Source: Bigelowiella natans CCMP2755 (lineage: Eukaryota; Protista; Cercozoa). From it: a stretch of DNA of 64,000 nucleotides. Where the stretch lies: the NCBI GenBank assembly GCA_000320545.1, contig ADNK01000506.1:62001-126000 (forward strand). The letters run 5' to 3'. Each line of letters opens with the position of its first letter. The stretch's first letter is position 1. Below are positions 747-63,767 of the stretch, in pieces. The translations under genes were made by a program, and so were the position numbers. The notes under the pieces are model-generated. The model saw only the letters and a program-made list of their open reading frames with translations, ran no database searches and had not been told where the DNA came from.

Positions 747-1450
747 TGAACGCGTTGTCATGTGTTCAGCGTTACGTTTGAGCCACGAGTTTTGTTGTTT
801 CTTCATGGATCAGCGCATCATGCACGCCACATTTTGATGTGTCATGCAAAAAGCTTCAGCGTTACACTGACAAGCACTGTCTGCATTGGTTCAATCATTG
901 CATGTTCCTAGATTCTAGCTGTTTCGCTAGTTCGGCGGGGTCGTGAATGCCAAAATGTGTTGAATGTTGCAATCTGTCACCAGCACATACTTGACACATC
1001 TAGCTCATCTCTAGCTAAACAAAATTGATTGATTCTGGCTAGCTAGCCAGTGGCTTTGCAAATCCATTGCACAGCTAGACAACTCTAGAGCTAGCCAGCT
1101 AGCGAACACGAGTTTCATTCCTAGCATTGTTCAACTGTGAGATGCGTCAACAAAGAAGATCAATGAAATCATCTAGATGTGCGCAGAAACATGCAAGCTC
1201 TTTTGTGAAATTAACTTCTTCTTAGTAGAAGGCCCCATGGGCGCAAATTGACATGTCTAGTCTAGAAGTGAGCACTAAACACAAGCTTTTCTTGAGCATC
1301 CCACCTACGCCAAGCAGACGCAGCAGCAACATCTTCTTTTGCGTGAGCCATCCATTCTGGCCTTTCTTTGTGTTGGGCTCAACATGTGTGTCAGATGCAC
1401 GAGTACTTCCTTTTCACTTGTTGCAGCATCACAGGCTGGCTGAACAAATG
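747..1450. other. TpA-skewed, CTAG-rich intergenic island (convergent spacer)
   Basis: Manual count: 25 TA, 15 of them in CTAG, in ~700 bp. Confidence 0.85.
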
Positions 1451-1501
1451 TTGTAGAGGATCGCCGTGATGAAAGTGTTTGATCTTTATGGACTGTCCGT
1501 T

Positions 1502-4500
1502 TCACGTCATAGTTGCAACTGCTACCCCATGAACGAAATTTTTCAAACGCGTGTGGTGTCTGTGCACGATTTATCATTAGAAAATTAAAAATAGTCTTGC
1601 ATCGAGCAAAATATTTGTGAATCTACTGACGATGTTGGTGCTCGTTCAAGAGCAGATCGCAATTTAGCACAAGCAAGGTCCAGGTCTAAACATTGCACCA
1701 CCCTATTTGTAGAACGAACTTCCCAAATGCAATTCTCAATGATCAGAATGTACTTACCAACATCAAGAGCTAGGGACTGTCGAATGTGGCTACAAACTTT
1801 TCGAGAATCCTTTAAGCCTGCAAACATCTAGGTGCAGACGCCAATTTCATTTTGGAAAAGTGAAACGAAGAACGATTGAGACCTTCGACACAAAATGAGC
1901 AATAGGTTTGTGATTCTTCACAAGAGCGCGGAAAGCCAGCAGCGAGGTGTCGACGAAATTGTGCCAATATAGACTTTCATTAAAGGTATTTTTAGTTGTG
2001 GAATACATTGGAAAATTTGTTACTACCCCATTGCTTGGTAAAGCTTCCTAGTTGTGGCGAACCTGGACATGGTGTGTGTTGCAGGAAGATAAGATAATTA
2101 ATGAACTCAACACATTTTACCGAGACGTATCCAGCGTAGGTTTATCCCCAAACATAAATCTAATGTTCATTTCGGAACATCATTAATCGCATGAATCAAG
2201 ACTTGCACACATTGCACACAAGATGATTCTTGCAATTTACCCAAAGTCAACATGAGCCAGAGATCCATTCTGATTCACCTACCATTTCATAGGTCTTTTG
2301 AAAAAGACAAACTGTATGATGAAGGAGAAGTACTAGAATGTTGTCGTGATGGCGGTCGCGAATTCCCAAGACATATGCGCTAATGTGTGATCTGTACGAC
2401 ATATGGAAATAAAGTCAGTCGCTATAAAATTTATTATTTTCATCCTTACCCAACGGCAGTCGCGATAAGAACATCTAGTGCACCCGTACGGAAGTGTCCA
2501 ATAAGTTTCTCGATGTCTACTAATGGCACACTCCCGCTCACATATTCAATTGCACCTTGCCTGTAGCATGTAGGGACCTGTATAGAGCACTCTTTTTATA
2601 TTTTTAGACCTTTATGATTTGAATTTAATCGTACTACCACATTGTAAACGTGAGCATGGACATTTATTGCATTAAACTTTAATCCTTAAATATCAATATA
2701 CCTGACATTTTTAAAGAACACAATTGAAAGCTCCAAATCCACCTTCTTTTTCCCAGATGTAATTGAAGAGGCGAAAGCAAGATAGCACTGCCAAGTCCAA
2801 TCTTAAGTCATCCCCGACCTATAAACTTCTGTTTTAACGAATTAAATTTTCACGTTTTAGATTACTACCTTGTAAATAAACCTAAGACCTTTTTGTTTAG
2901 TTTCCAAACTTGGTTGAGTCTCCCAATCTCCCCCAACCTTATTACATTGAATCTAATCGCATCGAAATTTGGATTCAGTACATTGGCATACCGTAACTAA
3001 AGCTGGCTTCAACTTCGATTTATAAACTTGTAGAACAGTGATACTTGTCAACTGGAATCAAGAGAAGAAATTATTAAGTGACAAGATGGATGGTTATTTC
3101 TAACCATTTACCCGATATTCAGAAAAGAATGGATGGTAGACATGGTCGCTTGGACCTAAATATGAATAGAAAACTTCTGATTCAAATACGCTTTGAAGGT
3201 GTATTAGTACCAATTTCGGCTCTGTACTCTCTTTTCCTTTTGAAATTTACTCCTGAAGTGAATCACAAATGGAAATTATTGGATTCGATGCTTCGTAAAA
3301 ATGTTCTAAGATTTTCAACCAAATTCACCAAACCAACGATGACCAGTTACTGTTACTCTGATTGTACATTATGAATTTATGAATGTACAAAATGTTCTTC
3401 AATTCACATTATGTTGGCCTCATTACTGTCTGATGATCCTCTTTGTATCATGAACGTCAACACTTGTATCTTCTTCGTTTGCTACAATTCCTTCATTTTG
3501 TTGTCTAGTTTGCTTTGTAAAACGATCCAGAGTGTCATCCTGAGAAAACTAAATCAGCCCAAAAAATTATCTATAAAGTTCTGGTGACCTTTGTTGCACC
3601 CTCACTGCTATCATTTGCTTGCGATATGGTGTCTATTGTATTGCACACATTGTTATCTTCAAACCAAATAGCCGTGATTTTGTGCCAACCGTTGTCAAAG
3701 GTAAATAAGGTTTTTTTGAATGCACGCGTTTGTCTCTTTAATCGTCTAGGCGTCGGTGTACGAGAATTTTTCCTTGCTTCTTGGATTTCTTCGAAAATTT
3801 CGGAGAAGATGTTCATATCCTCGTACACCTTTCTGCAGTAGATATTGTTTCACAATCCTACCAACTTCTGCAATATAAATATATATATATATATATATAT
3901 ATATATATATATACTCCACTACCCCTCCATGGACAAGAGGACTTCATCATCCTTTGTCCTGAGGTAGCAAATGATCATTGGAATCATCTACAACGTACCT
4001 TTAACATTACCGTGAGGCACTAAGACCAAAGATATTAGTCATGCTTCCTGGTTCGCTTCTTCCGCTTGAATTACATCGGTGATGTCCCTTTCTCCTCAAT
4101 TTAGAAATCCCTTTAAGTGATACGCTGCGACTAGGACTGGTACTTTGTCTGCCTGGATTAGTAGATCTCAAATTGTAGCCACGAAGACTCTTATTTCGGG
4201 GAGATGTCAGGGATTTCTCGGTAGACGAGGCTGTTGGAGAATTATTGCGGGATGTAAAGAAAATTCTGTCCTTGATCCTTGATTGGAAGTAGAATTCTAT
4301 CGCCTTTAATGTTGGTTAACGTCATTTTATGATATACTGTTCGATGTCATTTTATTTTTTAACCTGAACAATGGCTTGACTAGAGGCGCATCGACGTTGA
4401 ATAATTTTCTTGATACAAATTTGGACCTAAGGAAAATTACTGGAATATCTATTTTTTTTTTCCTTTTGCTACAATACCTCCGATGGCCAGAAAGTAATTG

Positions 4501-62528: not shown

Positions 62529-62733
62529 AAGATGGTAGTAACAACATTGATGGTTAATGAAGACATGAACTAGCTTAACCGTTGAGTAGTTTCCATCATC
62601 ATGATTATCACCCTCTTCATCATCATCGTTCTTCTTTGAGGGGGTCTTCTGCTTGTTTGTGTTTCATCGACACTGTAGCTGCTTGTTACGTACTGTTAAT
62701 TTTAACTGTGAATCCTCCATGTCGCACCAAAGA

Positions 62734-63597
62734 AATCCCACTAAAAACATGGCATTCACGAAACCACTGTGTTGAATTGTGATGGGAAGATTGTGCTCCT
62801 GACAACGTTGGCTGCCTGTCCAACTTCATGCCTGGCACGGCTTTTCTCGAGTTCTCACACGAGAGAGTCCTCGTTGTTTTCAGCTCGAGGCACTGCGTTT
62901 CGCACTTTGCAAGTGTCATGCAACACTTTGGAAATTTGCTCGATGAACAAAGTTTCTTTCTTTCTTTCTTTCTCTCTTTCTTTCTTTCGATCGTGTGTGA
63001 CTTCGCCGGACGTGAAACAAACCCCCAATTTCACGATCCTTTCAATCGCTCTGATGGAATCACTTCTTTCTTTCTTTCATTTCCGTCAATTGAGGAGGGA
63101 ACGGGTGAGTCAGCGTGTTTTCCAGTGTCTCACGATCCTTTCAACTGCTCCAAATGTGGAAACACCTCTTTCTCTTGATTCTCCGACACGCCAGCACGTG
63201 GTGAGGACGAACACGAACATCGCACATGCTGGCTAGACCGTCGCCGCACGCTTTCCAAGCAATGCGTGCATGCGCGTGTGCTTGATGGTGTCGCACGCAC
63301 GCACACACGCGTGGAGGCTGTGCAGTTGGTCGTGCACACAACCTAGCTAGCTAGACCCACAGCCAGCTAGCCAGGCAAGCGGCATGGATTGACAAGCGCG
63401 CGCAGGCTTCATCGCAAGAAGTCCAGAAGTGACACATCGTGCGTGCTAGCATGACAGCGCCGACAATCTGCCCAGACATGCCGAGGAATCTAGAAGTGTC
63501 CAAGCCAGCTGTGTCGGTCCCGGCATCATCTGCATGCATGCCGCGCGCATGCACATCATGGTCACAGCCACCTGAGGCATGACAAATGCACACAGAC
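62734..63597. other. Extreme TpA-depleted intergenic island
   Basis: No TA at all in 62734-63233; the 7 TA in 63234-63597 are all within CTAG. Confidence 0.9.
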
Positions 63598-63767
63598 TAC
63601 ACGATGAGTCTGGGAGACACATGCTGGCACAAGCATGTCTAGATGTACATGATTTACTGCGCATTTGAGCTCAGCATTGCAGCATGTGATTCGTCGAATG
63701 ACGTGGTGAGGGTCTAGCTAGATGGCTTCAACTGAATTTTCTCAAAAACTAACACATTGTGGGGGAC

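Follow-up and report, generated by a model that had tools for sequence, protein, structure and literature searches.

Ten intergenic spacers, here called islands and numbered in order of position, were analysed in a 64,000-nt stretch of DNA from Bigelowiella natans (the window), which is gene-dense, has a G+C content of 40% and contains abundant introns and microsatellites. Sequencing runs filed under one species label contain 99-100% of the words sampled from the window. Two independent layers probably overlap in these spacers past gene 3' ends. The first is a distinct dialect of short words rich in TG, CA and GpC, which all ten islands share; the second is the footprint of hypermutation at the dinucleotide TpA, which is found in five of them and whose saturated blocks adjoin a repeat of ~295 bp. 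The TpA-specific mechanism is already published and no new pathway is proposed here. What is new is descriptive, namely the separation of dialect from footprint, the occurrence of short blocks between housekeeping genes, and the asymmetric association with the repeat. What was observed directly is the direction of the change and its sequence context, the association of TA-free blocks with the repeat, and the asymmetry of the block around it.

In 15 mutation-accumulation lines of B. natans, 231 of 302 nuclear point mutations fell in integrated giant-virus and virophage regions, where the mutation rate was ~1000 times the background; A>G and T>C changes, reported on TpA, made up 230 of the 231 (Mettrop et al., bioRxiv 10.64898/2026.01.13.699255). 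Among the 71 mutations outside the viral regions nine were on TpA, seven of them in or near virus-like open reading frames (ORFs) and two not; over 3,132 generations, then, only two TpA transitions lay beyond virus-like neighbourhoods, in 27.6 Mb of callable intergenic DNA (bioRxiv 10.64898/2026.01.13.699255). That preprint proposes an ADAT2-like adenine deaminase, with Bn78255 as the candidate, and itself likens the process to fungal repeat-induced point mutation (RIP). A preliminary description of the window had deduced a strand-symmetric A->G/T->C change at TpA, which is what was measured in those lines and what the repeat copies described below also record; its remark that it knew of no described pathway of this kind is superseded by the preprint (bioRxiv 10.64898/2026.01.13.699255), the analogy with RIP included.

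Loss of TpA in the spacers

TpA loss was measured as TA/(TA+TG+CA), the TA share, which was chosen because transitions keep the purine/pyrimidine class. CTAG was excluded, as many of the CTAGs here are insertions. The non-CTAG TA share was 0.067, 0.119, 0.025, 0.077 and 0.026 in islands 1 (positions 747-1450), 2 (11970-12540), 5 (28264-29480), 6 (36890-37390) and 10 (62734-63720), respectively, compared with 0.337 in the rest of the window. It was 0.22-0.34 in islands 3 (14980-15530), 4 (22980-23420), 7 (43200-43900), 8 (48400-49150) and 9 (58890-59400), and by our own estimate the small shortfall of these five is mostly an effect of their higher G+C. TpA loss is real in the first group and the second lies near the background share, so the earlier claim of a loss running from near-total to slight through all ten islands stands for half of them. 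The loss is most complete in islands 5 and 10. There is a single non-CTAG TA within 28262-29140 of island 5, and none in the 856 bp from 62742 to 63598 of island 10, whereas the mean spacing of TA in the window is 14.4 bp. The ratio of TG to CA in the islands ranges from 0.71 to 1.29, ie both products of a TpA transition are present. The 1-kb thresholds of the preprint (rho TA <= 0.43, rho CA+TG >= 1.52) are reached in two stretches only, 28001-29800 and 62701-63700; the depletion in islands 1, 2 and 6 is not long or not strong enough for them, and islands 3, 4, 7, 8 and 9 fall short.

In the preliminary description the mutator was aimed at untranscribed DNA beyond the terminator as such. Stated in full, this explanation makes the ten islands one class, whose members have been converted to different degrees from a TA-rich, partly (TA)n-like ancestor, and we consider it distinctly unlikely. 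Position does argue for it. That the islands lie just past gene 3' ends was confirmed independently for islands 1, 2, 3, 5 and 10, and is suggested at the level of ORFs for the other five (a self-trained codon-usage map of the window was noisy and served as a hint for gene placement only). All 300-bp windows with a TA share below 0.12 are in the 3' spacers of the five depleted islands except for one, in an exon at 5301, and none is in an intron or a head-to-head spacer. However, five of the ten spacers are at the background TpA share, and the saturated blocks coincide with copies of the repeat. The scarcity of TpA transitions outside virus-like neighbourhoods in the mutation-accumulation lines, two in all, also argues against targeting of this kind. 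Three DNA sequencing runs revealed no differences over islands 2 and 3, which points the same way, but weakly, as the runs may come from the source strain. The saturated blocks retain hardly any TpA on which a present-day mutation could fall.

Selection, rather than mutation, would require that TpA be avoided in 3' untranslated regions (UTRs) and termination zones on account of RNA instability or cryptic poly(A) signals. Coding windows also go down to an observed/expected ratio (O/E) for TpA of ~0.4, and 3' UTRs do extend inside the island edges. We nevertheless regard selection as highly improbable, and as an explanation it is already largely refuted. Reads are nearly absent from the core of island 2, which is outside both poly(A) ends: the poly(A) tails of 3'-end RNA reads are at 12016 and 12067, plus-strand read depth falls from 62 to 0.1 past 12100, and minus-strand reads begin at ~12500. 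Half of the spacers keep their TpA, and the mutation has been observed directly in the laboratory (bioRxiv 10.64898/2026.01.13.699255). The changes within the repeat, given next, are a further argument against selection.

The repeat and the mutation footprint

A search of the 91.4-Mb assembly, in which the window is C3231:62001-126000, gave 482 candidates for the ~295-bp repeat, with scored matches mostly 80-96% identical. At its 3' end the repeat has a stem-loop-like core followed by a tail of simple repeats, and 5' truncation is common among the copies. Judged by this structure it appears to be a retroposon-like or SINE-like (short interspersed element) family; tRNA and Rfam scans of the repeat loci returned nothing real that would correspond to a tRNA head of the SINE type. 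With the nhmmer profile of the family just two copies were found in the window, and these are in the two nearly TA-free islands. A full-length copy at 28319-28608 (plus strand, E = 7e-104) occupies the first quarter of island 5, and a truncated copy of the superfamily, consisting of the 3' core, is at 62861-62953 (plus strand, E = 5e-15) in island 10. The truncated copy is followed by a (TTTC)n tail at 62953-62988 and shares 87% identity with the copy in island 5 across 53 bp. This core is the only homology between islands and is common to islands 5 and 10 alone; islands 1, 2, 6 and 8 are single-copy. The possibility raised at the outset, that the islands are copies of one TA-poor repeat family, is thus borne out for parts of islands 5 and 10 and not for the single-copy islands. 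At six genomic loci (L008, L024, L025, L028, L033 and L035) full copies have extra partial 3' cores 0-350 bp downstream of them, as if the element had inserted more than once into its own tail or into a single type of target.

The statistics for this family rest on 30 sampled copies or loci. Their alignment has mixtures of TA, TG and CA at eight dinucleotide positions. At one of these the copies carry 16 CA, 13 TG and zero TA between unambiguous flanks, and therefore an ancestral TA was altered independently in separate copies, to either product at the same site, as selection would not predict. Across the copies the rate of T>C was 0.227 before A, compared with 0.025-0.054 before other bases, and the rate of A>G after T was 0.19. 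Sites with TA in the consensus were found as TA in 51 cases, CA in 20 and TG in 17, with no other state. The three TAs that remain in the consensus are all within CTAG, and 42% of these were converted; CTAG mutates more slowly, but is not immune. Comparison of repeat copies shows in this way a strand-symmetric TpA -> TpG/CpA signature in islands 5 and 10.

TA-free blocks around the repeat

The first 500 bp on the 3' side of the repeat had a mean TA share of 0.014 (30 of 30 loci). At the same loci the TA-free tract had a median length of 838 bp downstream of the repeat and 154 bp upstream (Wilcoxon p = 2e-8). Averaged TpA O/E was 0.06-0.10 just downstream and had returned to ~0.7 by +1.2 kb, and on the upstream side it climbed from 0.27 to 0.86 across 1.4 kb. 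The downstream flanks are non-homologous between loci, apart from the occasional partial extra repeat cores. Upstream depletion increased with the divergence of the copy (Spearman -0.45, p = 0.013); how much TA an element had kept was only weakly correlated with how much its flanks had kept (p ~0.08). Windows of the dialect type within 750 bp of a repeat had a TA share of 0.007-0.06, compared with 0.22-0.34 in the repeat-free dialect islands of the window.

Both copies in the window have the 3' end of the element facing the 3' end of a minus-strand gene, and in both the block halts ~120-170 bp before the stop codon of that gene, a gap that would correspond roughly to the length of one 3' UTR. 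Beyond the blocks the sequence tends to be pyrimidine-rich on the strand of the repeat (mean skew -0.03), which hints at genes facing the block. Both features would also be expected if untranscribed DNA past the terminator were the target. The orientation of genes around the 30 repeat loci was 6 versus 8 on the upstream side, with a weak trend on the downstream side.

These observations can be accommodated in the second of the two layers as follows. The published TpA -> TpG/CpA hypermutation would erase TpA in blocks of ~1 kb, with slower change at CTAG, and each saturated block would fill the intergenic DNA between a copy of the repeat and the 3' end of the gene that faces it. The repeat, or silent chromatin around it, may nucleate the editing, which may then spread from the repeat into single-copy flanks; a DNA-acting adenine deaminase would be the enzyme. 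The reproducible one-sided geometry around a short retroposon-like repeat offers a concrete handle on the question of how the mutator is targeted.

Several points weigh against this scheme. The 30 loci were picked through the repeat, and are consequently silent on what share of TA-free blocks lack one. Islands 1, 2 and 6 are poor in TpA and yet single-copy, with no repeat detected by nhmmer and no protein domain, and therefore the repeat is either not necessary or has since been lost. Repetition alone is no trigger, because a second family, a ~90-bp repeat with at least 457 genomic candidates that are ~90% identical, keeps most of its TAs: in 17 copies, 117 of 135 consensus-TA cells (87%) are still TA, although TG or CA is the outcome of 17 of the 18 changes at such sites. 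Simple two-sided spreading does not predict the strong downstream asymmetry. A one-sided block agrees with spreading from the element in one direction, and agrees equally well with an insertion beside DNA that was already TA-free; the same holds for the youngest copies of the ~295-bp repeat (0.4-1% divergent), whose downstream flanks are already TA-free and which are also compatible with insertion beside pre-existing TA-free DNA.

If insertion preference were the explanation, TA-free, TG/CA-rich DNA would have come first, with the retroposon-like element inserting beside it in fixed orientation as a marker rather than a cause. Non-LTR (non-long terminal repeat) elements that target microsatellites do insert in fixed orientation. 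The strict asymmetry of the block, the saturation of downstream flanks even at the youngest copies, and the partial extra cores often found just downstream, as if insertion had been repeated at like sites, would all follow. We consider this course of events unlikely, since the element itself has been edited after its dispersal and upstream depletion grows with the age of the copy. A mutator working at ~1000 times the background would, moreover, saturate the flanks at 0.4% background divergence anyway.

A further possibility, which we put forward tentatively and rate as doubtful, is that the mutator edits whole untranscribed intergenic units bounded by transcription units, and that it is activated in one direction, starting at the 3' end of a retroposon-like element opposite a converging gene, rather than by sensing 'foreign' sequence. 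Convergent transcription, small RNAs and silent chromatin are examples of possible switches. Editing of such units would explain why single-copy host DNA is erased, why the block is one-sided, and why it halts about one 3' UTR length before the facing stop codon. Most of the blocks in islands 5 and 10 and all of islands 1, 2 and 6 are single-copy and give no protein-domain match, whether their origin is foreign or not.

The spacer dialect

The other layer, the dialect, is present in all ten islands. The O/E values of TG, CA and GpC are all 1.3-2.0 in the islands, compared with 1.24-1.26 (TG and CA) and 1.05 (GpC) in the whole window. A scan with 400-bp sliding windows and a joint threshold of TG+CA >= 1.45 and GpC >= 1.4 selected 19 windows, 16 of them in the ten islands and one adjoining island 6, in agreement with the preliminary description of the islands as a distinct class; the same scan bore out that the other spacers are ordinary, with the dialect in none of them. 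Enriched words were ATGCAT, CATGCA/TGCATG, GCATGC, GCAC, GCGC, CGCG and words that contain CTAG. TGCA and CATG occur in the islands at 4.4-4.6 times expectation, and GCGC at 7 times its level in the rest of the window. The word list first given for the islands does not hold for each of them: island 1 lacks GCATGC, and islands 2, 4 and 5 lack GCTAGC.

Two further features mark the dialect, alternation of purines and pyrimidines and a particular insertion scar. The TA-keeping islands 3, 4, 7, 8 and 9 had an alternation index of 0.59-0.64; for islands 2 and 6 it was 0.57-0.58 and for islands 1, 5 and 10 it was 0.525-0.544, against a background of 0.496 (standard deviation 0.05, 400-bp windows). 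The scar, ascribed to a transposon, has the form N4-CTAG-N4 (8 bp, with the same N4 on both sides). There are 24 in the window, where ~1 would be expected from its 209 CTAGs, and 21 of the 24 are in islands; examples were seen at 12310, 12343, 43652, 48770 and 58888. Alternation, GpC excess (in ATGCAT, CATGCA, GCATGC, GCGC and CGCG) and these scars are common to all ten islands.

That the dialect is a product of the mutator, as was originally supposed, is not tenable. A TpA mutator is incapable of creating alternation, because A>G and T>C never alter the purine/pyrimidine class. Islands 3, 4, 7, 8 and 9 show the dialect at a normal TpA share, with no shift from TA to TG/CA, and therefore the dialect is separate from the mutator footprint. 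It follows from this separability that scans for the mutator should use TA/(TA+TG+CA) without CTAG, and not richness in TG and CA.

Alternation could still have been inherited, as the model of a (TA)n-like ancestor with a mutator past the terminator proposes: conversion of alternating TA runs would keep the alternation and would yield TGCA, CATG and CACA. We rejected independent partial conversion of a (TA)n ancestor as the origin of the dialect. It predicts equal numbers of TGCA, CATG, CACA and TGTG, and the observed counts were 123 and 118 versus 70 and 70. It predicts that GpC makes up ~13% of purine-pyrimidine steps, where ~29% was observed, and it leaves the 5-7 fold enrichment of GCGC/CGCG unaccounted for.

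The dialect probably arises by insertions. In the mutation-accumulation lines 17 of 21 new indels were intergenic (Table S2 of the preprint), and many of the new indels were short insertions ending in ACA, such as ACA, ACACA, CAACA and strings of 7-11 bp (bioRxiv 10.64898/2026.01.13.699255). One may speculate that a process of ACA-ending insertion supplies the alternating, CA/TG-rich dialect of the spacers.

The window as a whole is rich in tandem repeats (92 entries), with (GTA)n, (TCA)n, (ATG)n, (AT)n and (TG)n very dense in introns and exons. The preliminary description of introns loaded with TA-rich repeats is accordingly sound, (AT)n and (GTA)n arrays being numerous there. Microsatellites are almost missing from the ten islands, unlike the introns and exons of the window.

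Comparison with known systems

The published B. natans system (Mettrop et al.) is the closest to the footprint described here. It is in the same species, A>G and T>C changes are restricted to TpA and give both products, and low TpA is accompanied by high CpA+TpG. The viral regions in that study are 25-186 kb long, its clusters are of at least 3 kb, and targeting is ascribed to foreign origin. The tracts in the window are ~1 kb long, between ordinary genes and beside a short non-coding repeat, and include single-copy DNA. Position at gene ends, asymmetry and slower change at CTAG are not mentioned in the preprint. Blocks of ~1 kb, below its 3-kb cluster cut-off, thus sit between housekeeping genes and take in single-copy DNA.

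Fungal RIP resembles the process in that transitions in a dinucleotide context accumulate locally to saturation in repeated or mobile DNA and can leak into the flanks. RIP, however, changes C->T, chiefly at CpA, and so decreases G+C, whereas the A:T->G:C change at TpA seen here increases it. The islands lose TpA, and their CpG is retained or raised (CpG O/E 0.58-1.03 in the islands, 0.72 in the window), which is not the RIP direction of CpA->TpA; retention of CpG and the opposition to RIP had both been recognised from the start, correctly. Nor was dependence on duplication seen, since the ~90-bp family is spared and a single-copy viral insert was hit in the preprint.

Editing of retroelements by ADAR or APOBEC in animals likewise leaves clusters of deaminase-type transitions, and the preference of ADAR for a 5' U matches TpA. 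If an RNA intermediate were edited, the marks would be on one strand, and within the element only. Here one and the same site has TG as well as CA, and flanks that are not mobile are affected too; RNA-level ADAR editing fixed by retroposition is ruled out by these TG and CA products at the same sites and by the depletion of non-homologous flanks. Base J and hydroxymethyluracil in kinetoplastids offer the parallel of a DNA-level mark past gene ends, in regions of RNA polymerase II termination. For TET/JBP there was no match to PF12851 in the genome, a result that is uninformative since control genomes also gave none. Among candidate enzymes, one locus of the A_deamin type and six with the cytidine/tRNA-adenosine-deaminase fold were found in the genome. 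The sole A_deamin (ADAT1/ADAR-type) locus, at G000:C2414:14438-15741, is not discussed as a candidate in the preprint.

The islands and their neighbours

Island 1 is a convergent 3' spacer with moderate to strong TpA depletion and is rich in CTAG scars; CTAG holds 15 of its 25 TAs, and its only match in the genome is to itself. Its left neighbour is the terminal exon of a DNA ligase (546-746, plus strand, stop codon at 744-746), which matches Pfam DNA_ligase_A_C at profile positions 68-94 of 94 with E = 8e-4, under the curated cut-off. Island 2, the gap between convergent transcripts described above, is single-copy, as is island 6. Island 3 comprises a convergent gap and the 3' UTR of a minus-strand Torus/CCCH/RRM gene, the Torus domain being found in the ORF 15835-17358. 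RNA reads extend on the plus strand up to ~14900 and on the minus strand from ~15300. Its TpA is kept (TA share 0.224) and its alternation index is 0.605. Island 4 likewise combines the dialect with retained TpA (TA share 0.27, alternation index 0.636, GpC O/E 2.04), and the ORFs that flank it end at 23144 (plus strand) and 23514 (minus strand).

Island 5 is a tandem spacer downstream of a minus-strand carboxyl-transferase gene, of which the near-C-terminal exon (29723-29959, minus strand) matches Pfam Carboxyl_trans at profile positions 394-478 of 493 with E = 2.5e-16. The part of the island from 28612 to 29480 is single-copy save for one weak match of 76%. Two minus-strand ORFs of 446 and 134 codons within 26751-28272 adjoin the island; they are of low complexity with a TpA O/E of ~0.4, and neither has a Pfam domain, the scans including the TA-poor 446-aa ORF at 26751-28088. 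These ORFs may have been held open by TpA loss and not be a real gene, in which case the depleted region would be wider than island 5. ORFs inside islands 1, 2, 5, 6, 8 and 10 likewise gave no domain in Pfam scans, and are probably open just through the rarity of TAA and TAG.

Islands 7, 8 and 9 have the dialect and keep their TpA. Island 7 (TA share 0.273, alternation index 0.617) contains five CTAG scars, at 43343, 43422, 43525, 43652 and 43808, and has at its edge a copy of the ~90-bp high-copy repeat (43157-43249, plus strand). This repeat, as seen there and at loci L040-L052, contains a hairpin with a 7-bp stem and is often preceded by a (TA)n run. In some places several copies, in both orientations, lie within 1 kb. 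A miniature mobile element and a small functional motif are both conceivable. Island 8 (TA share 0.255, alternation index 0.633) has only its self-match in the genome, and a plus-strand ORF of 310 codons ends before it at 48325. The TA share of island 9, 0.336, is that of the background.

Island 10 is the spacer directly downstream of the gene for the largest subunit of RNA polymerase II, and starts 45 bp beyond the stop codon that ends its C-terminal domain. The translated frame (63765-64000, minus strand, stop codon at 63765-63767) has canonical YSPTSPS heptads and a short acidic tail before the stop, and the gene leaves the window at its right end.

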